Of a stretch of DNA of 64,000 bases, positions 17,041-31,300 are shown one piece after another (position 1 is the first letter of the stretch; the number at the start of each line of letters is the position of its first letter). Below the pieces are notes generated by a model that made no database searches, had not been told where the DNA came from, and saw only the letters and a list, made by a program, of their open reading frames with translations. A program made the position numbers and the translations under genes. The DNA comes from Bugula neritina (lineage: Eukaryota; Animalia; Bryozoa): NCBI GenBank assembly GCA_964035545.1, contig OZ037767.1, forward strand, positions 24,258,628-24,322,627, given 5' to 3'.

Positions 17041-20000
17041 TTACTCAACAGAAAACTTATAGCTTGTGGTATGGTGGTACTGCTCCCCTGGCCTCAGAAC
17101 ACAGCTTGGGAAGTTAGGCTACAATTTAATCAGATTCAAGAACTGAAACACATGTTTCTAATTAACATTTCTGATTGTTTGACTAATAGCTCTAAAGTCT
17201 AACCAATACAAAAATCACCATTAGTCTACATTGACTAGAGACACAACAGTAAAATTTCACTAAACATAATCTAGACACAAAACAGTGTCTGGTATTTGAG
17301 GTCAAGTTTGTTTATATCATAAATCAAGGCAGTTCACATTCCAACAAGTTTCATGAGAGAAATACCAACAGCTATATATGTCTAACTTTTACAACATTTC
17401 TAACTAGTACAGTTCAAAGAAAATACATTCCGTCATGCAAAAATTAGCCCAAGGGTCAAGAGGAAAATTTGGCTACAGAAACTTTAAATTTGAAAAGGTA
17501 TTGCAACAAATTTGGCAGTCAACGCAAAGACTAATCTCGGAGATTTAAAAAGGGTAAGAAATGGACTCATGCTCGCATTACTTCCTGAACTTACTTTATT
17601 TGGAGAGTCAGGATAGTGTTGAGTTTCCAGACAAAACGCAGAGTATGGCCCATAGTGATGGCCACTTTTACCATCTGCATTTAAATAGTAGCCTGTGTAG
17701 AACTGCACACCAGGTTGGGTGGTGTGCACTTCCATAACTCGGCCACCCGCAGTAACTCTACCAAAGTAAACAATGGTAGTCAAAGTCTATACACATGATG
17801 TGACATTTTATAGTATGTGACAGCCTATCAAGATAAAGAAATGATCTCAGAAAAACTTATACAATTATGTATCTTTTTATTTTGTTGGCTGAGAAACAGT
17901 CTATATTAATTAAATGCTGTCACTTTAGCAAAGAAAATCTCTGTAATATAAGCAATTATAAAATGTCTGTAAAAAATGCATTACAAATATCTCTTACCGT
18001 CCAACAAATCTCATCTCTCCAGTTTGACCCTCCACTACAAAGTTATGATCATAGCCCTAAAATCATAATGAGTTTGTAACACAAATTCTAACACAAGCAG
18101 ACACTAATATTTTACACCGAATTCGCTCTGAGAAATTGTCACCATAGGATTGATTAAAGTCCAATCTACTCCACACACTACTTCAACAAACGTAATTTCC
18201 ATCTCACTCTATCACATAGCAACTTTTCATCACAACATAAGTTGACAGTACTGTGGGTTTGGCAACTGCAAACTGTTAAGACTCAAATTTCACAATAAGA
18301 GTCAGTAAACAATGTATTTTCAATTACTTAGAGCTTCCAATGGATGTTTCCAAAACTCTATTAGCAGCTTAATTTAAAAGTAAAACTTTTTAAAAATAAA
18401 TACAATTGCAATAAAATAACTGAAAGCATACTAATCTGCTTTTAGTAGTTGTATTTGCAATGAAACTTTAGCAAAAATAATTAATTTTAACCCAAAAATA
18501 GAATTATCAAAACTCCAAGAGGCTAGATAATGCCAGCATACACTCATCACTGCCTCAGTCTGTACTGCTGTGTATTTACTAAAGACAAGCTGTTCTAACC
18601 TGATTATCTATAGATGCTAACAAGTCTTGCGTCAAAACTGTAGATGATCGAAGGTCAAAGTTAGTGTCAGTTACTGAAGTTATCTCCCCTGTAGGAATGC
18701 TGACATCGTCTTTAGGCGTGTACTCATTGCAAGCAAGTTGTATCTTATGTGAGAATATGTTTCCTGTAGCCTGAGAAACAAATGGAATAAACCGCTTTCA
18801 ATGGCATGATTGTAGAACTTAAATTATTCGAGTCCAGTGGGTAAAGGTTTGCTCAAGGTGAGTGAAAAAACTGTGGACAATGACACCAGTTCTACTGAAC
18901 CCGGTGAGTATTATATCATTTCTCCAGTGACATAGTATATACGAATAATAAAATATCACAATTTTAGTATCCGCTAGAAGTATAACACAGCTATATATCT
19001 TAATTTGAAAATGTTACAGCATTATAGGCAGCTGCCTGTTGAATTTAAAATTGTATTTTAATGGTGGCCATTTACTACCCTTTAAAAGTTACGATTCTAC
19101 AGTTTCTATAATAAACGCTGACTACAACTACTAATTTATCTTTAATTCATAAAAAACAAAACTAAAAATAATCACAAAATTCTAATTATAAACACTTGGA
19201 TTCCATGAATTGAGTATGAATAAAAACAGCTACTTGAAAACACAAAACCAAATTAACAAAGTCATATCTGCCAGAAGTTCTAGCTGACAGCATTTGCCAA
19301 ACATTTGACCAATGACAGTCTTTGCTAACTATCTTCTCCACCTGACAGGTGAGAAAAGCCTGTGTTTTAAAATAAAAATGTAACAAAAGAAGTAATCTTT
19401 TCTCGGAGGATTTTAACCCGGCCCCAAAACAAAATTTAATAAAAGAATAAGAAACTTAGGCTATAAAGATTTCTCCACCACAACACCTAAAGAACAAATA
19501 AAAAGTCACAAACAGGTTTCTAAAGTTGATGAATTAACATTCAGAAGTTGTACCATGAAATCAATTTGGTCGTGTATGTAACTCTAAAGCTGTATTTACG
19601 CCATCAAAAAATTTCTGCAGATTTTAATAAAACAAGAATGTAATTAGACAAGCCAACTTTATCAAGTAGAATACAAACAGTGGACGCATTATAAACCCCT
19701 GTAACAGCCATACCTCTCCCTCTAAGTTAAAGTAAGCGTGATTGGTCAGGTTCAGAATAGTTGGCTTGTCTGTAGAAGCTTCGTAGTCTATCACAAGTTC
19801 TGCGTTTTCAGTGACCTCATAAGTCACCTTGACCTTGAGTTGGCCGGGATAACTCTCTTCACCATCAGCACTGGTGTATGTCAGAACCAGCTTGTTATCA
19901 ACTATCTCATGGTCCCAGTTTTTCTACAAGATAAGCAAGATATTTATTGAACATGAGTTGCTGTCCTAAATTAAATTGAAGTCAGCAAGTAAACTTTGAG

Positions 20001-21847
20001 TAGAGTTACATAACACTGTAGCTGCCTCCTACATGCAAAATAAAAATAATGCAAAGCTCTTGCAAAACAGCTAAAACTGAAAAAAGTTGCTGAAAGTTGG
20101 GTACCTATTAGCAGATGTCTGAGATCCAGAAAGATACACAAGTCATTGTTTTCTCATTTCAGAACAAGATGACAGCATGACATGTATCTTGTATAAACAA
20201 GCAAGCATTCCAAATGCCCAGGTAAAACAATGTATGCAATACATAACACCAAAATACAGCTTTTACAACAAACTGCTAATAGCGCAAACATTTTTAAAGC
20301 TGTATTCAACTGTAGAACTTGAATAAATAATCTAAGAATACAGTATTATGACAGGAAATAGAATTTTTCATTGACTTGAAATCTGAAATTGTTATCAAAA
20401 ATGTCTTCTGACCAAATAGTTTATAATACAGGATATACTATGATAATTGAGGCTTCAAGCTTTCAAATGAGATTTTTCATTACTTTAACAAAGAGTATAG
20501 TCACCATATATGTGAGAACCCCCCCCCCCCCCCCCCCCCGATGGTAAGCATTTTTAAAATCGGGCTAAAGATTTATTCAGATGTGACACAGGAGTAATTA
20601 TGACTGAATGCTCTTCCTAACATCACCACCGGTGTTTGGACTTAAACCATTGACCCTGTGTTACACTAGGCCAGTGTTCCATCCACTAAACGCAGCGCCT
20701 CCCTTATGTTATAAAATATAGCCGATATTACACTATAAACTCACATTAGAAACTGATAGTCATAGTGACACACACCTTATCAAACCCTGAAAGCCCGCCA
20801 TGTAAATGATTTGGTCCATTATTCACTGCCAGCTGGTAACTAACACCATCAAGGGAAAACTTTCCATTCGCTATACGATTTGCAAATCGGCCAACCAGTG
20901 CACCGAAATAAAACTTCCCGTACTCTACAACAACAGTATGTCATGAAATGAAACCCATTTTGAGTTCTGAAACTATACTCTAAAGGCTGCCACTAATTAG
21001 TTTGGCAGCCATTCATTAAATTTAGGGTTTAACACAATATTTCTCATGAACTTTCATTCAATTACTAAATAATTATCTGGTTTAGAATTAAAGCAAGAGC
21101 CAACCTTGAGGAGTGTCATACCCTAGGGTGACATCTATTACTTCTCCCTGATTATTTGGAGCAAGAATACTCTGTATTACACCACCCAGAGAGTAAATAA
21201 CAACTTCTACACCACCACCGCACAGCTTATACCTACAAATATCCTTTGTTTCATCACAACACAGCATATTAGTTGAAACAGAAAATATCGAATTTTTAAG
21301 ATGAAATAGAAACTTGCTAAAAATTGCACAAGTTATAATTTATGCTGCACTATTTTATATTGAAATCATTATACTGATACAGTTTGGGTTCTAATTCTAG
21401 TTTGGTTTGTTGTAACACTGGGCTTAACCGTTATGGCAAATTAAATTAATTTATTAATTAATTGCTTACAATTTAAGTTGAGAACTGAAATTGAGGCTAT
21501 ATCATAACTTAGATAATACTACTTTGAGTAGCCATAAATGATAAATGCATTTAGTATCCCACAAGGATGAGAACTATGACTATCACAATGGCGGATGACT
21601 ACTATGACTATGGTAAGAACAACACCATACTTGTTTTGAGTCTTAAATTATTACGTTAGGTTTATAGTTTAATTTTTCATTTATTATTATATAACTCGTG
21701 TCCATTGCCACCTATAGCAAACCTAAAGATAAATGATCCAGTATGATTATGAGTATGTTCAAACTTGTGAATGAGTTCTAGTTTTACTCACTGAGCAGTG
21801 TTATCTTCCCACAGTTTCACCAATGAAATGGTTGCTGCAGATGCCAT
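17041..21847 (-). CDS. GALM: Galactose mutarotase / aldose 1-epimerase, canonical paralog, 337 aa, 8 coding exons
   Basis: Exons 21792-21847, 21105-21232, 20776-20924, 19714-19923, 18600-18770, 17998-18056, 17595-17757, 17041-17118 (1014 nt). Motifs [50 protein letters not shown] all intact. Confidence 0.95.
19350..19489 (+). mobile_element. MITE family A, copy 2 (diverged, left end degraded)
   Basis: gagaaaagcctgtgttttaaaataaaaatgtaacaaaagaag...aaacttaggctataaagatttctccaccacaacaccta. Confidence 0.65.
20595..20699 (-). mobile_element. Degenerate tRNA-derived SINE with GGAAGAGCAT core
   Basis: Minus strand reads GGCGCTGCGTTTAGTGGATGGAACACTGGCCTAG...GGTTTAAGTCC (A/B-box-like), then GGTGATGTTAGGAAGAGCATTCAG. 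Confidence 0.45.
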
Positions 21848-23519
21848 AACTGATCCTGATAAAAATTACCAACTACAATATAAATAAGCAAAAGGCTAGT
21901 GGCTAATGCTAAAAGTAATAGCAAATGTATGACTGCAATTTTTATTGTAAATCAAGCAATTGATCAAATTAAGGTCAAGGGCGTGAGCTTTAGCTAGCAA
22001 AAACTGTAACTAAGTGAAAATCTAATGGTTAATGAGTTATCCCCGTAATATTGTTTAACAGTCACAGTAATTGTAAAACTAAGTGTGATTGCTACCTGAA
22101 ACTGACAGTAAAACTCAAACTGAAATAGTAAAATGAAAACTACTCGAAGTAAAACTGAAAGTAAAATTAAAACTTAAATCATTCACAATTATTATAATCT
22201 ATAAATATTGCCAAAAATACAGAAGGTACAAAAATTCAAAATTTGCACAGTGGTTAAAGCTTATTTTACTTGTACCAGTATAACAATACAATAACTATAA
22301 AATTGCTTATAACAGTTACAAAAGATCAACCTTAATGAGCGCCGACTCTGAGCAAGTTGCAAAAGTGTAGCTGAGGTTTCATAATTTTAAAAGATGTTAT
22401 ATCGAGGCAGGCTTGCGCATCTCCAAAATTTAGAAGCTTTATGTAGGTTTCAATCCAAGGTTATTATACTAGCGATGCCATTCTACCCTTTATAGTAGGC
22501 GTGCCCTGTTTCCTTCAAAAATTCATATTTACTTACAATGTGCAATCTACATACTTCTAAAACTTGATAATTGAGAGAGGTAGATGTCTGGATTTACATG
22601 AATTGTTGCATAGAGGAGCTTGTTAAAATAATCTTAGGAAAACCCATTTAGTTTGCCATTTTATTAAAAAATAGTTATGAGTAATATTATATGGTATGAG
22701 CCTAAAAATTGTTTTTAACATCTAACAAACCTGTGTTTGCACTAATGAAATTTGGCCAACAATAAGAAAGTTTTTAAAAAACTACACTTTCGCTAAAAAT
22801 GAAAAAAAAATGAAGCTAGTTCTCCTGAAACTGTGAAAAGACTATGGGCTTGTAAAAAACAGTTTCTTGCTCAATCATATACTGATTTGTCAGCTGTAAT
22901 ATGGTAGCCACTGGACATTTGCATTAACTTTTGACATTTTAAAAAGCAAATTAAAAATTTTAGTTTACTATTGTTTGCATGTACACTATGATCATAGATA
23001 GAGTTTGAATTTGAGCCAAGGCATAGGTTTAAAATGTCTACATTTACAACTATATAACATCGATATTATAATATATTGTCACAAATTGAATATAGCCTAC
23101 TGCATATTTTCCCAATGTTTTTATTTTTCTTACAAATTGTTGAGAAATACAGCTGTAAAAATATATTTAAGTAATAATGATTTGAAAGCTTCAAAGAAAG
23201 AAAAATAAATCAAAAGTACATCATTAATGAAATATTGCAGTTTCCACTACATGTACAATTTATTAGAGTTGAGTAACATACATATAATAGTCAATATAAA
23301 AAGTGTACTTTAAATTGAATCTAATGAGAATTATAAATTCTAGCAGAACAAAACAATAGAACATAGTAAGCTCAAAAATCGCTTATGATGATCAAAGCAA
23401 ATTATGTATATTCTAAAATTTAGCCATCAAAATATTATAGCAGCTACTAGCTTCTTGTTAATGAGTGAATGTCAAAATCGGACGTGCATTGTGTTAGCAA
23501 GTACTTTTACTTGCTAGCA

Positions 23520-26500
23520 CTATTCCATTAGGAACTGATACCAGGTTGTGTCGCTGTATACCTCACCTGGTCTCAACACAGCTTGTGGGAATTGAGGCTG
23601 TAAAACAAACAAAAACATTTTATCAACTTATTAATCACTCAGCAATTATATAGAAAATAAAAACAAAGCAGTTAAGGTCTGCCCACATGAAGAAAAATTT
23701 CACATGTAAAACCTCTTTCGGAGTTACCTGCTACACACAATACTTTGACAGTTGGGGTCAAACTTCAGTGGCAAATTGTATTTGCCCACAGTTTGACTAC
23801 AAACTATTTTATTTAAAATCTCAATAATGCATAATAGACCGTAATAAAAGAACAAAAGGAATAAAAATAGACCGAGAAAAGCGGAATCACTAAGCAGTAC
23901 TGAGACAATTAGATCACCGCCTATAAGAAAATCTTCCAGTAATCGTTCAGCATGTTAATTGCACAAAACAGCCCTATTATGCTCTATGTGGCAAAACCTC
24001 AAGTAATTTAATAACTGTGGAATAATTAGCAGTATAATTTCAAGAGCTACCTTATTAGGAGAATCAGGGTATGCGTTGGGAAAAAGGCACATTGCAGAGC
24101 ATCTGCCGTAAGTAGCACCATTCTTGCCTTTTGGAACAGAGAGGGCATATCCTGTGTAGAAGTGCAATGAGGGGTGAGTGGTGTACATGTCCAGTATTCG
24201 TCCATCTGCACTCACCCTATAAATCACCAAGTTATACATACACCTAAATCAGAGTCAGCTACACATATATATACCAGCAGGCATGCACATATACACATAT
24301 AACATATGCATGCATTATATATATATACACACACGCACGAACGCACGCACACATGATAACATCCCGGTGACAATGAGCAACTAATCAGGGTGATATAAGT
24401 CAACTTTTTTAATTGACTGAGGTACATGGGTTAAAAATATTACATAAATGGTGCTTAAAACAATCGCCTGCATTGTATGTCCCTTCTAACTAAAACTTAC
24501 TGGCATACCTTCCAACATAGTTCTTACAGCCTTGTTTACCTTCTATAATGTAATTTCTATCAAAACCCTAAAAAACACAAAAGTATCACAAAAAGTGGAA
24601 ACATGTAAACAAGTATATGGTGAATACACACAGTGTCGTTAGTCAATACGATTGCTTCTGCTAAGCATGCAGCAAGTGCATTAGATTTTGGTAAAACTTG
24701 AGCTAGCTTCTGGTTCAACTTCCCTTTGACAAAAATGAAGCTGTAAAATAAATCATGTGATGATCAAATGTTTAATAGGATTGTCATGTAACAAGACATA
24801 GTGCCTTTATACTGCGTAGGTTATTGGCACACACTCAGTCTAAACTTGCTTACTATTTACATCTAAAGTATCATAGTCGTCACTGTTGAGTAGCTCCTGA
24901 GTCAGCAGCTTCCCTTGTCTCATGTCAGCATCTTTACCCTCCACCGACTCCACGTGACCATACGGAATCTTTGTGCCATCCAATGGTGTATATTCAGAGC
25001 ATTTCAACTTGACAACATGATTGGATATGTCTCCTTTACTCTAAAACATAAAAACAAGGTAAAAGCTTCAAACCTAATGCGATATTTCATATAATTACAT
25101 TAAAAATTAAGTCAGTTGTGTGGACACAGTAACATATTGACACAATGGCCTGCAGAGTAATAGGTAATATGTACTATAGAGCACCAGTTTTTAGCTCCAT
25201 ACATTCATCTCTGGCTCTACCATTTGACATTTTATTTCTAGCACAATGTGCATTGTATTTTTGGCGATTTCATGAGACGTAAATTTGCATGTACACTAGA
25301 AATTTTGCAACAAAAATGGCACAGATTGAAATTTCATATAAATATTTATAAAAAACAAACTTCAGAATTTCAAGAAGATGAAGTCTTACAGCTTTTTATG
25401 CAGCCTCATTTTTAGTAGATATTAGTAGCATGAGTTATTGCCTCTGTTTAATACAAAGCAGATGCATCATAAACCAACACACAAATCACTCAGCTAAATA
25501 AAACTACTTCTCAGCATAATTACAATTTAAAAGACCTAAGTTTATGAGCTAAACTACTGGAAAATTATACACCAACAGAAAATACTAGTAAAATACGCAC
25601 ATGGCCCTGCAGGTTAAAGAAGGCATGATTTGATAGGCTGACAATAGTCGGTTTGTCTGTGACGGCGGAATAATCCACGATGATTGTTGCGTCATCAGTG
25701 ACCTCATATGTGACCTTTGCCTTCAGTGTACCTGTCGTTAAAATAATATAATACTATGATATAATAATATAATAATAGCATAATATTATATTTTAAGTGC
25801 ATTCTAAACTATATATAAGAGCATAGCATATTCCAAGTTATAATTGACAGTTGTAATAAGGGTTATAGAGTAGAAAATGGCTCAATCCTAGGCTAGAAAT
25901 ATAAAGTTGATAACAACTGACTGAATGCATAATATATAAAGAACTGCTCATAGGCTACCACATATTTGCCAGTGTAGCTGTAACATGAATAAACACTAAG
26001 TGTGAGACATAACCAGCATACAACAAAGGGTTTCTGGCTCACCTGGGAAATTCTCTTCTCCATCAACACTGGAGTAAGTTAGAATTAACTTACTCCCACA
26101 TACTTCATACTCCCAAGGTTTCTGTGATAACAATAGGTTCAGTATTTTAAAAAGTGAGTCATGAGTGACAATAATGACATCCTAATTATATTATGACATC
26201 CTATTATATTACTTTCATAGACTGAAAATTTTCTATAAAAAAAACTACAATGAGCACTCATTCATATCAACTGTAGAAATAGTATTTATAGTAGTACAAG
26301 TGAAATGGCTCAAATAGAACCAACATCTACCTGGTCAAATCCAACAAGACCTCCGTGAACATAGTTTGGCCCATGGTTGATATTTAGTTGGTGTTGTTTA
26401 CCATCAAGTGTGAATTTGCCATTAGCCACCCTGTTTGAATATCTTCCAATAATACCGCCAATGTACTGCGCTCCATATTCTACAAACATATAACCGTTAA

Positions 26501-27005
26501 CACATGCATGTGTAGTTTATAACATTGATATGCATTTATTATGCATATAATATACGAGCCTTGCACGATACAAAACTCAATCAAGTTTTGCTTGCCCTAA
26601 TTTTTTTGTAATATAGAAGGAATTAATAATTGTTAAATCTCCTAAATACAGATGAAATATGTCTAACTTGCAATAACGTAACATATGGTAAGATAAAATT
26701 TGCAGCACACCTTGAGGAGTGTCATACCCAAGTACAACGTCTGCTAACTCTCCATCTTTATTGGGAACTTTGATGCTCTGTATAATACCACCTAACGAGT
26801 ACACAGTCACCTCAATGCCGCCACCACTTAGCTTGAACCTGGATCAAACCAGGCTAATAATCTCACCTGACTGTATACTTGGTGAACGCTAATGAAACTA
26901 TGAAAGAAGAGATTTATTTGAGGAAGTGGCATGGAGTAGAGCTACGCCTACTTACTCAGTGGTACCATCATCCCATTTCTTTACTATCTTCACTGCTTCA
27001 CTCAT
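23520..27005 (-). CDS. GALM: Galactose mutarotase-like paralog lacking the catalytic Glu, 339 aa, 9 coding exons
   Basis: Exons 26956-27005, 26711-26838, 26331-26479, 26043-26121, 25601-25731, 24861-25040, 24509-24567, 24051-24216, 23520-23597 (1020 nt, open). GRYSNRVANG, VHGG, SNHAFFNL, GFDRN retained; CLETQ replaced by CLFPN and VQFYTG by LHFYTG. Confidence 0.92.
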
Positions 27006-28149
27006 ACTGTTTTTAACCACCTCTTGTATGTTATGGCCTTGGAGACAGCTGCCACTATGAATACAATTCAAATAATCAAAACTATATAGTCACAGCCTTT
27101 CTATACATTTTGCTATAAATAGTAATACTCCATAGCAGCACTACCTAAATTTACAGTAAAAGTTAAAGTTAGAGTACTGCATGAAATAATAAGCTTACCA
27201 GCTTGATCACAGAGGTACATGTAATGCTTATAGGTTTGTAATGCAACATGGGACATGGGGTTTATTTTTCAACATGAGGTTTTGAACTCTTTATAAACAA
27301 AGCATGACCCATCAATGTTCTTTCTGCTGCTATCCCTTAGGGCTTAGACTAGACATCCTACTAGTCCAATGTGTGTATACAGACACCTTTTAGGTCAAGG
27401 GTTAATTTACACAATTGCACAATGTATATAAACATGAGCATTCATTGTGTAACTACTGCAACATCTAATTAGTCATTACTAATTTATAATAAATACTAAT
27501 TTATAATAAATACACAACTAACTTGGATTACTAATAGACTATTATTGCAATGACAATATTGATACAATCCAATGCATTATTTGTGTAGCACCAACTATAT
27601 CTGTTAGGTTTAACTTGAACTAGTATTACTATTAGTATTAATATAACTATACATTGCATATAAATTAAAATATTCTTCATTTACAATTACTCAGTCTCAT
27701 ATTCATATTGATATTATTGAAATTTATTATTGATACATTAATATTTTAATTTAAATATGAATGTAAATAATACTACTAATAGTAATAGTAATACTAATAA
27801 TAATATTTCACTAATATAATAAATAATGATAATTATAGTTGGAAACACATACATTTACGTTATTATTAGTATAAAATTTGATATTCATGTTGCTGTTGAA
27901 TATAATTATTGATAACTACTAAAATTAAAAATAAATTAAAATGGGAAAATCAAAATCAAAATGAAAATCAAAATGAAAGTGAAACTGAAAGTGGCTGTTG
28001 ACTGTTGTTATTTTTGCAATACACTTATAGTTACAGTTATAGTTACTGCTACACAACTCAATTCTGCCATTCAGCCATGTTATGTACATCATTATGATAA
28101 CTTCTAATGTTGAATCAGTGTTGGTAACATGTGAAAAAGCAAAACATGT

Positions 28150-28370
28150 CTTACTTAGGCTTTATTATTTTTTCTACTACTACTCATACACGCAGTGTTA
28201 CAAGTTGATGGTTACTTAGAGTTGTCCTTTCACAACATCGTGTTTTGGTTTACTAGCCTAGTACCGCTGCCAATAAGCTGAGAGGTGAAAATCGAGAGTG
28301 GCGCGTGTAGTACCCGCACAGTTAATTTTTTTTGAAACCTAGAACTAACATTTCAAGATGGCAGCGCCCA
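28150..28370. promoter_or_regulatory. CpG-enriched probable (bidirectional) promoter region of PAK1IP1 / GALM-like gene; YY1-like CAAGATGGCAGC over the ATG
   Basis: Local CpG cluster (gtggcgcgtgtagtacccgc); head-to-head gene arrangement. Confidence 0.4.
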
Positions 28371-31300
28371 TGAAGAGTCACGTTCCAGTAGAGGGCCTCA
28401 AAGTTGAACTTGTTATCGGATCATACTACCAAGTCTTGTATGGGTACGAGTTGAAAGAATCAAATAACAAGGTAGAACTTGATGTTTCGTTTACTAATAA
28501 TACTCACTGCGGGTCAGTCCGATCATTGGCAGTCTCTTCAAATAAACTACTAGCATCTGGTTCAACTGATGAAAATATTCAGCTCTTCGATCTGAAATCT
28601 AGATATGAGGCTGGGACGTTAATGAAGCATAGTGGCACTATTACAGACATCGAGTTTTATAATGAGTTTATGATATCTTGTGATGATTCTGGCATTATAT
28701 GTATCTGGAAAGTGCTTGGCAAGTCGTTTGAATGTATGAAAACGCTCTCCGGTCATAAGGGATCAGTTGCAAGCCTTTCTGTTCACCCTTCTGGCAAGAT
28801 ACTGCTATCTGTTGGGCAAGACAAGACTCTGCGTACTTGGAATTTAGTAACAGCTAAACGAGCTTATACTACAAACACTCCTTCTATGATAGACATTGTG
28901 CGTTGGTCTCCTGATGGGGAAAAATACATTCTTTGCTACAATGGAAAAATTGATATTTGTTCTATGGCTAAAGCTGCTTCTTTACATACAATTAAGTTAC
29001 CTGGAAGAGGCCATTCTTTAGATTTTGTGTTCAGTGAAATTTTTGCTGTCGGGTGTGAAAATGGTCTGTTAGTTTTTGTGAACGTCAACTCTGGTGTAAT
29101 CATTCATGAATACAAGACTGCAAGCAACAGAATAAAATGTGTTAGTGCTCACGAGTTAGACGACTGTAAATCCCTTCTTGCTCTAGCTACAAATGATGGG
29201 GTGGTTGAATTGTTGCTAATAAGTCACAATCTTGGCAAAGTCTCTACTTCTCTTATTGCTGCTACCAAACATGATTTAAGACCCATATGCCTTCAGCTGG
29301 TTGTAAATACGTATGAGGAGGAAAATAAAGAGGACAAGCCTACATTGGTGTCTACAGTAAGTAATTTAGTGCAGTTTTTAATTTGTGTTGTACCCCTAAA
29401 TCATTCAAAATGATAAAATAGCAAGGCAAAGTTTGGCATTTTTCAAATGTGTTCAGCTAATAAAAAATTTTGCATTTTTTACCTCAAGCTATATAAAAAA
29501 AGTATGGTTAATATTACAAATGTTCATTAGAAGTGCCGAAGAATAAAACAGTGTGATATGTTTTTCAATAGAAAATTTTAATTAAGCCCAATGTTTTGTG
29601 TAGTAAGCACATACTTCTGTTTAGCACATCAAATATTAGTCTACACTATAGATATTATATCATAAGATTATCCATTACTTGTATTTTATGTTTGACTTTG
29701 TGTTGTTTTAGGGTTGTGAAAAAGCTGTTGAGAAGGAGGCTGACAAGGAGCTGGATACTTCAATAGATGATCAGAAGGATGTTGCTGTCACAGGTGAGTG
29801 AGTGGAGTTGAATATAACCTTGAACTTCAAACAATTTTATATACCTTTTTATTGGATCAGCTGTGTTATACTCTGGCAACTTTCAGAATTAAGTTAAGGT
29901 AGAGAAAACGCTTGTTAGTTTTTCTATACTGTAGTGAATTAATGACATCTATAATTTTTATACATTTAAAACAATTTTTTATATGCAAATTGGTAGGTAA
30001 AATCCTTAACTTGTTGAATAATTTTTGTACCTGCTAATGACAATAATTTAAGTTCAAAATTAGTACTTACCCTTAAAATATTAAATTGTAATTATATATT
30101 AATGTCACAACTGTTACTTATAATATAATGTCATCTGTTTTATGTTAGTTAAATAGCATGCTAATAGCACTTTCCTTAAGATACTGACAAAATGCAGTAT
30201 GAACAGAAAGCTGAAAATAGCAACATGTGTATAGTTGGTTAACAGAGCACATCAAAATGTATAATTCATTAAACTGAATGTTCACCTAGAAGTATGTGCA
30301 CTGTGCTTTCATCAATATTTGTAAAAAGAACTTGGGGAGTTATCTTTTTCAGGTGTTCTAAAACCGCCCACTTATAAAATGGTGCAACATAAACTTAATA
30401 TAGATTTATAATGTATTAAAGGTATTTTTTGTGTTCCATAGTGCACATGTTGGAGTCTAATTTATTATGTATGAACATTATTATAACACTGTCACTGCTA
30501 TATTTATGCTCTGATTTTATTTTCACCAATTTAATGTTATCTCCTTATTTATTTCATTATAACTATTATCAATTGCTATGACTTATATTATAAATAAAAA
30601 TTAGGTTTATTATATTAATAATATATATTATTGTGTTGAGTTTCCGCACTTATTCTAGTATCCACGCTGACTTTGGAACTGCAGCAACCTTCACCTTTTC
30701 CTTTTTTTAGTTTCAAACTCAACGTACATTGCTCCCTCTATATCTCACTAAGCTTTGGGTTCAAAACCTCACTTTGTGACAGTAGAATATCATATTCAAC
30801 TCACGGATCCGTTAAATTCCTGTTAAATATTCTTATACACACATGATGTGTAAGCTACAAGACAGGGTCCAAGCCCTTCTCGTGACTTATGGAATTTTGT
30901 GAGAACCATGAGATACGGAGGGAGCATTGTATATGATTCTATGTTGACTACTGTCCCAGTGCTTGAGGGGTGCTGCATTTACTGGTGTCTTATATATCTT
31001 TCTTAGCACTCTTGTCAATTCCTGCCACTTCTCCATCCTCCACTTTACTTTGTTCTGAACTCTCTGGCTATCCTATTTTATGACATCCTATTGGCTAACC
31101 AAGTGTAGTCTCCTCTCACCTTGCTAGCCTGCCTCTACTAAACAACTCCACTGGGTTCTCCAACGCTCTTTGTGGTTTTAGCAGTGGTGTGTGTAGTGTA
31201 GTGGGTTACAATTTTGATTATATTTCAGACAGTATTTTATTATTGCAGTATTACTGGCCCTCACTCTACTTAATTGTTGATATTCTATTATATGTTATCT

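Follow-up and report, generated by a model that had tools for sequence, protein, structure and literature searches.

A tandem pair of mutarotase-family genes

The window analysed here is a 64,000-nucleotide stretch of the Bugula neritina genome. Two genes of the aldose 1-epimerase family, which we call A and B, lie in AT-rich animal DNA within it, both on the minus strand, with gene A 2.3 kb downstream of gene B (Table 1). We rebuilt gene B from the raw window sequence and found nine exons with a coding length of 1020 nt, corresponding to 339 codons and a TAG stop, and every intron has GT–AG borders. This rebuild bears out the complete 339-residue reading frame and intact splice sites claimed in a preliminary description of the DNA. 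The exon 1 peptide and its ATG are also kept in L012, a contig from a sibling Bugula lineage introduced below, and the N-terminus of the protein is hydrophilic and lacks a signal peptide.

Table 1. Positions in the window of genes A and B, selected codons and neighbouring features
Feature	Positions	Strand	Observations
Gene B	23520..27005	-	9 exons; aldose 1-epimerase family
Gene B exon 1	26956..27005	-	ATG 27005-27003; codons 1-16 plus 2 nt; GT donor
Gene B exon 2	26711..26838	-	AG/GT borders; paralogous to gene A exon 21232-21105
Gene B exon 3	26331..26479	-	holds Asn75-Arg76 and His101 of HGG; aligned to 1SNZ 72-117
Gene B exon 4	26043..26121	-	intron 3' of this exon absent in gene A
Gene B exon 5	25601..25731	-	SLSNHAFFN with acid His171; Pfam match, PDB alignment
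Phe173 codon, TTC	25619..25621	-	Tyr in 96% of family members (NHxYFN)
Gene B exon 6	24861..25040	-	most diverged exon; last 57 nt comparable in L008, L010
Gene B exon 7	24509..24567	-	GFDRNY with Asp242 (human Asp243)
Gene B exon 8	24051..24216	-	HFYTG and CLFPN; aligned to 1SNZ
His277 codon, CAC	24162..24164	-	opposite human Gln279
Phe304 codon, TTT	24081..24083	-	opposite human base Glu307
Gene B exon 9	23520..23597	-	TAG stop at 23522-23520
Gene A, canonical tandem paralog	17041..21267	-	CLETQ (Glu295), QFYTG, NHAYFN; Pfam matches
Gene A codon at base position, GAA	17625..17627	-	
Run of about 26 G	about 20515..20540	-	inside a gene A intron
WD40-repeat gene	about 28300..29400	+	single 350-aa open frame; seen through L012:1363-2415

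The family of gene B was determined by translating its exons and searching them one by one against Pfam PF01263 (Aldose_epim). Against a cut-off of 27 bits, exon 3 scored 49.7 bits (E 4.5e-13) and exon 5 alone scored 32.7 bits, and exons 6 and 8 matched profile positions 166–213 and 235–278, in order. The joined protein models of A and B were used locally for alignment, tree building and codon counts. A PF01263 search of the whole assembly recovered the same gene B exons and found A and B to be the only GALM genes in the genome. The sole other match in the assembly, at G000:C7:15408337-15408474 (L007:1321-1671), was considered as a third GALM copy on C7 and rejected; this weak match is a VIWNPW...CVEPG exon of glucose-6-phosphate 1-epimerase type, with the Glu kept.

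The two proteins are 55% identical, and 78% of the synonymous sites differ between the genes (pS 0.78, with a dN of 0.38). The paralogs are thus as strongly diverged as had been asserted, and since their synonymous sites are saturated, the duplication is old. All six introns of gene A occupy the same alignment column and phase in gene B, which therefore points to a tandem duplication at the DNA level. One gene B intron is absent from gene A: a single 210-nt exon of gene A (19714–19923) corresponds to exons 4 and 5 of gene B, which are split by a phase-1 intron, and this intron was either lost in A or gained in B since the duplication. A maximum-likelihood tree pairs A with B as sisters (SH-aLRT support 100%), and the branch of B, at 1.04 substitutions per site, is seven times longer than that of A (0.15).

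Several other features of the locus are recorded here as side observations. The 5' end of gene A can be placed at an in-frame ATG at 21267, or the gene may be spliced at an AG acceptor just upstream of 21232, which has the position and phase of gene B exon 2; use of this acceptor would imply a further first exon of gene A in the sequence upstream to 23519. A long run of G lies inside one of the gene A introns. The WD40-repeat gene is head to head with gene B, and a bidirectional promoter region may serve both.

Catalytic and sugar-contact residues of gene B

In human GALM the catalytic base and acid are Glu307 and His176, respectively, according to the structural work as quoted in PMC11441068, and the same source places Asn81, Arg82, His107, His176, Asp243, Gln279 and Glu307 around the sugar. 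The Asn-Arg and HGG alignments reveal that the chain index of the human structure 1SNZ runs two ahead of the native numbering. Phe304 of gene B, encoded by TTT in exon 8, is therefore opposite Glu307, with CLFPN aligned to CLETQ. The TTT codon differs from the GAA codon of gene A at all three bases, which excludes a one-step error. The general acid is kept as His171 in SNHAFFN (human His176), and five of the seven human sugar-contact residues are unchanged, namely Asn75, Arg76, His101, His171 and Asp242 (human Asn81, Arg82, His107, His176 and Asp243).

These results agree with most of the preliminary description. The change from CLETQ to CLFPN is found both in the 1SNZ alignment and in the raw sequence, the change from NHAYFN to NHAFFN is present as Phe173, and the NR, HGG His, NH His and FD Asp residues are retained as claimed. 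The change from QFYTG to HFYTG exists as well (His277), but it has no diagnostic value: of the best 150 library matches to exon 8, 146 keep the Glu, and 15 of these 146 carry His at the same position. His277 was rejected as a marker of lost function for this reason.

We compiled a table of conserved columns from A, B and 45 full-length homologues obtained in the representative search, in which 61 columns are at least 85% conserved. Gene A keeps 59 of the 61 columns and gene B keeps 52. Two of the nine departures of gene B are common to gene A and seven are its own. Among the latter, Ile77Val and Leu152Ile are mild; the remainder are Asn167Ser and Thr169Ser, which turn NLT into SLS just before the acid His, Tyr173Phe in NHxYFN, Glu304Phe, and Gln306Asn. 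Five of the seven sit in two active-site motifs (NLTNHxYFN and CLExQ), and the preliminary description had listed neither the change of NLT to SLS nor the Gln to Asn change in ETQ. The base Glu is invariant in all 45 full-length homologues. As judged from these alignments, the damage to gene B is concentrated on the base and its surroundings, and the fold and most of the sugar contacts are kept.

Among the best 150 library matches to exon 8, the Glu is kept in 146, and the only Phe at the base position is that of gene B itself in the sibling lineage. Two other kinds of substitution were seen in the course of the searches. An animal GALM-like gene at L013:7010-7204 (NCBI GCA_029979725.1, JARPNT010011249.1), found also in L014, reads VMS at the CLE motif, with Glu replaced by Ser, and keeps NR, HGG, SHPYFN and GYDHN; the mutarotase base seems to have been lost independently here. 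The metagenomic aldose 1-epimerase fragments P0044 and P0152, each of 151 aa, have CLQPQ, with Gln at the base position. Given the Ser in L013 and the Gln in P0044, loss of the mutarotase base therefore recurs.

Sibling-lineage contigs and selection on gene B

When exon 8 was searched against 1.84 billion representative proteins, one near-identical match came back, P0001, which is an open-reading-frame fragment from a JGI metagenome; the second-best match was an A-type exon from a Logan assembly. The contigs used for comparison were L008, L010 and L011 (JGI 3300002729) and L009 and L012 (SRR4020083/84). They are about 88% identical to the window, introns included, and are therefore orthologous loci of a sibling Bugula lineage whose genome is distinct from that of the window; we take this lineage to belong to the B. 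neritina species complex as well. The TTT codon is also present in two independent contigs of this lineage, L008 and L010 (fragments P0001 and P0151), in both haplotypes.

Across the 239 of 339 gene B codons compared, which come from short metagenome contigs mixing at least two haplotypes (L008, L010), we counted 13.5 synonymous against 4.5 non-synonymous differences, giving a dS of 0.090, a dN of 0.008 and a dN/dS of 0.09. The neutral expectation is that 78% of the differences would be non-synonymous, and the binomial P for the observed split is 9e-7. In exon 8 the window differs from L008 by seven synonymous and no non-synonymous changes, and intron divergence in these contigs amounts to 12.3% of the sites aligned. 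The corresponding dN/dS for gene A is 0.13 (99 codons). Gene B is under purifying selection and is as constrained as gene A. That it is maintained and free of disabling lesions had been proposed earlier, and two of the checks suggested with it came out in its favour: the codon is confirmed by the two independent DNA contigs, and the dN/dS against the sibling lineage is well below the neutral split. Rapid change in gene B once it had been duplicated, followed by constraint like that now on A, is the pattern usually left by a shift in function and not by decay.

The sibling contigs have a tandem duplication at gene B exon 7 (L010:361-482, L008:362-464), which spans 63 bp in L010 (all of the exon and a TTAG) and 44 bp in L008. 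A GT donor is present at the 3' copy alone. Were the upstream acceptor used, the L010 protein would gain 21 residues and the L008 reading frame would be shifted, and the duplication could disturb gene B splicing in the sibling lineage; it may be a real polymorphism or an effect of short-read assembly. In X1, the one public run found to contain the stretch, window positions 21050–27049 are covered by DNA contigs that fall into two groups, one at least 99% and the other 90–95% alike, which suggests a mixture of two Bugula lineages or of strongly divergent haplotypes.

Searches with exon 8, with P0001 and with metagenome patterns found no ortholog of gene B outside the Bugula neritina complex. 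A word search with gene B exon 6 gave no candidate, and one with P0001 residues 9–63 returned P0001 alone. The metagenome scan with exon 6 gave 171 pattern matches, none of which was confirmed, and the scan with a degenerate CLFPNAYPD pattern, which may omit records near the window's genome, gave no match.

Possible roles of gene B

Homologues of enzymes that are catalytically disabled yet under selection are called pseudoenzymes. One is recognised by close kinship to an active enzyme combined with the loss of a catalytic residue that is essential, by an intact gene under purifying selection, by expression as RNA and protein, and by absence of the parent activity. Gene B shows the first two of these, since its protein is 55% identical to that of gene A with the base Glu replaced and the gene is intact and under purifying selection; the parent activity is predicted to be absent. 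Of the two catalytic groups expected in a competent mutarotase (EC 5.1.3.3), the protein has the general-acid His and lacks the general base. Our preferred reading, which we hold to be moderately probable, is that gene B encodes a selected, non-catalytic pseudoenzyme that still binds a sugar-like ligand.

The history that we reconstruct and the mode of action that we propose are as follows. Gene B arose as an ancient tandem duplicate of a bryozoan galactose mutarotase gene (PF01263). It then evolved fast and lost the general base (Glu to Phe304) along with two conserved neighbours of the base site (Tyr to Phe173 and Gln to Asn306), keeping the fold and the sugar-anchoring Asn75, Arg76, His101, His171 and Asp242, and purifying selection has since been as strong as on the active copy A. 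The protein, which has no signal peptide, is most likely cytosolic. A sugar or similar ligand would enter the old active-site cleft, where Phe304 would present an aromatic face, and the ring would stay closed. Gene B would thus act by binding, as a sensor, a buffer or a partner of another protein. We infer the loss of mutarotase activity, the ligand binding and the role from the sequence. Glu304 mutants of the Lactococcus enzyme are said to hold sugar still in their crystal structures, which fits binding without turnover in gene B. A more specific version, drawn by analogy, is rather doubtful in our view: gene B may be a sugar sensor or regulator that uses the kept Asn/Arg/His/His/Asp set and the Phe platform, with a Gal3-like partner, or its Phe/His pocket may support a chemistry new to the fold.

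Three other explanations have to be weighed against a sugar-binding pseudoenzyme. Gene B could still be an enzyme, either a mutarotase with another base (His277 or His101, each of which might substitute for Glu, or a water held by Asn306) or one with a changed substrate or chemistry, for example acting on a sugar acid or sugar phosphate that brings its own base. We consider this unlikely, though a serious contender. It would suit the kept acid His171 and anchoring residues, the purifying selection on B that matches the active copy, and the His at the Gln279 position, a sugar contact in human GALM. It is opposed by the Glu itself, which none of the 45 full-length homologues has lost and which 146 of the 150 best matches retain. 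A His at the Gln279 position occurs together with Glu in 15 homologues, and so is not a known replacement of the base. Tyr173 and Gln306 are gone together with the Glu, which looks like dismantling of the site, and mutant studies argue in the same direction, as Thoden and Holden reportedly found no measurable activity when the Glu of the bacterial and human enzymes was replaced by Ala or Gln.

A role that has nothing to do with sugars, in which the cleft is closed or holds some other ligand and the protein serves as a scaffold or partner as proposed for the testis-specific, enzyme-like paralogs of Drosophila, seems improbable to us. With a bulky Phe and a Pro after it in the middle of the site, the cleft could be closed rather than sugar-binding, and the long branch of B (1.04 versus 0.15), the heavy divergence of exon 6 and of the insert before GFD, and the regulatory roles proposed in the Drosophila precedent would all be in keeping with this. 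However, five of the seven sugar contacts remain intact after a long divergence, which would be unexpected if the cleft were irrelevant. The last possibility, that gene B is a duplicate now silent or in decay, or else an artefact of assembly or sequencing, is all but excluded. In its favour, no RNA run in the index of public runs contains the stretch, and the one matching run, X1, consists of DNA contigs. The reading frame has nevertheless stayed open through a divergence that saturated the synonymous sites, all splice sites are intact and the dN/dS is 0.09 (P 9e-7); the TTT codon needs three base changes and recurs in independent samples. On these grounds the pseudogene and artefact readings were rejected.

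Compared with human GALM (PDB 1SNZ/1SO0) and Lactococcus lactis GalM (1L7J), gene B belongs to the same family, PF01263, and its protein has the same length and likewise no signal peptide. It keeps the Asn-Arg pair, the HGG His, the NH His and the FD Asp of these enzymes and differs from them at four positions: Phe replaces both the base (Glu307/Glu304) and the Tyr of NHxYFN, Asn replaces the Gln of ETQ, and His replaces Gln279. Yeast Gal3 is a sensor derived from the galactokinase Gal1, and is a duplicate of a Leloir enzyme that binds its ligand without catalysis. The logic would be the same in gene B, although the fold and family are different, and the partner Gal80 and the ligands of Gal3 are known whereas the likeness of gene B to Gal3 is one of analogy. 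Glycoside hydrolases and polysaccharide lyases contain non-catalytic galactose-mutarotase-like domains with the same beta-sandwich, often near bound carbohydrate. Those domains are parts of larger enzymes and remote in sequence, whereas the protein of gene B stands alone and is closely paralogous to a true mutarotase.

The nearest precedent is in Drosophila melanogaster, where Zaru and Marygold 2025 (PMC11836677) predict the Galml genes, from their loss of critical residues, to be catalytically inactive mutarotase paralogs. Galml1 is a tandem duplicate directly beside Galm1, and the fly paralogs are mostly testis-specific, with regulatory roles proposed (PMC11836677). Gene B is likewise a diverged paralog in tandem with a mutarotase and predicted to be inactive, but it comes from an independent duplication in another phylum, and purifying selection is measured directly for the bryozoan gene. 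Pseudoenzymes of mutarotase type lying beside an active tandem copy had therefore been predicted before (PMC11836677), and gene B would be a further case.

Gene B leaves the understanding of the family and of the pathway unchanged and would not surprise those who study pseudoenzymes. It offers a clean natural mutarotase without its base, with the sugar-contact residues mostly kept and under selection, and its active twin A stands beside it as a built-in control. It also contributes a dated example for Bryozoa, a phylum that has received little study. The pair is convenient for asking what mutarotase-like pseudoenzymes do, a question left by the Drosophila Galml genes, and makes gene B a well-controlled candidate for bench work.
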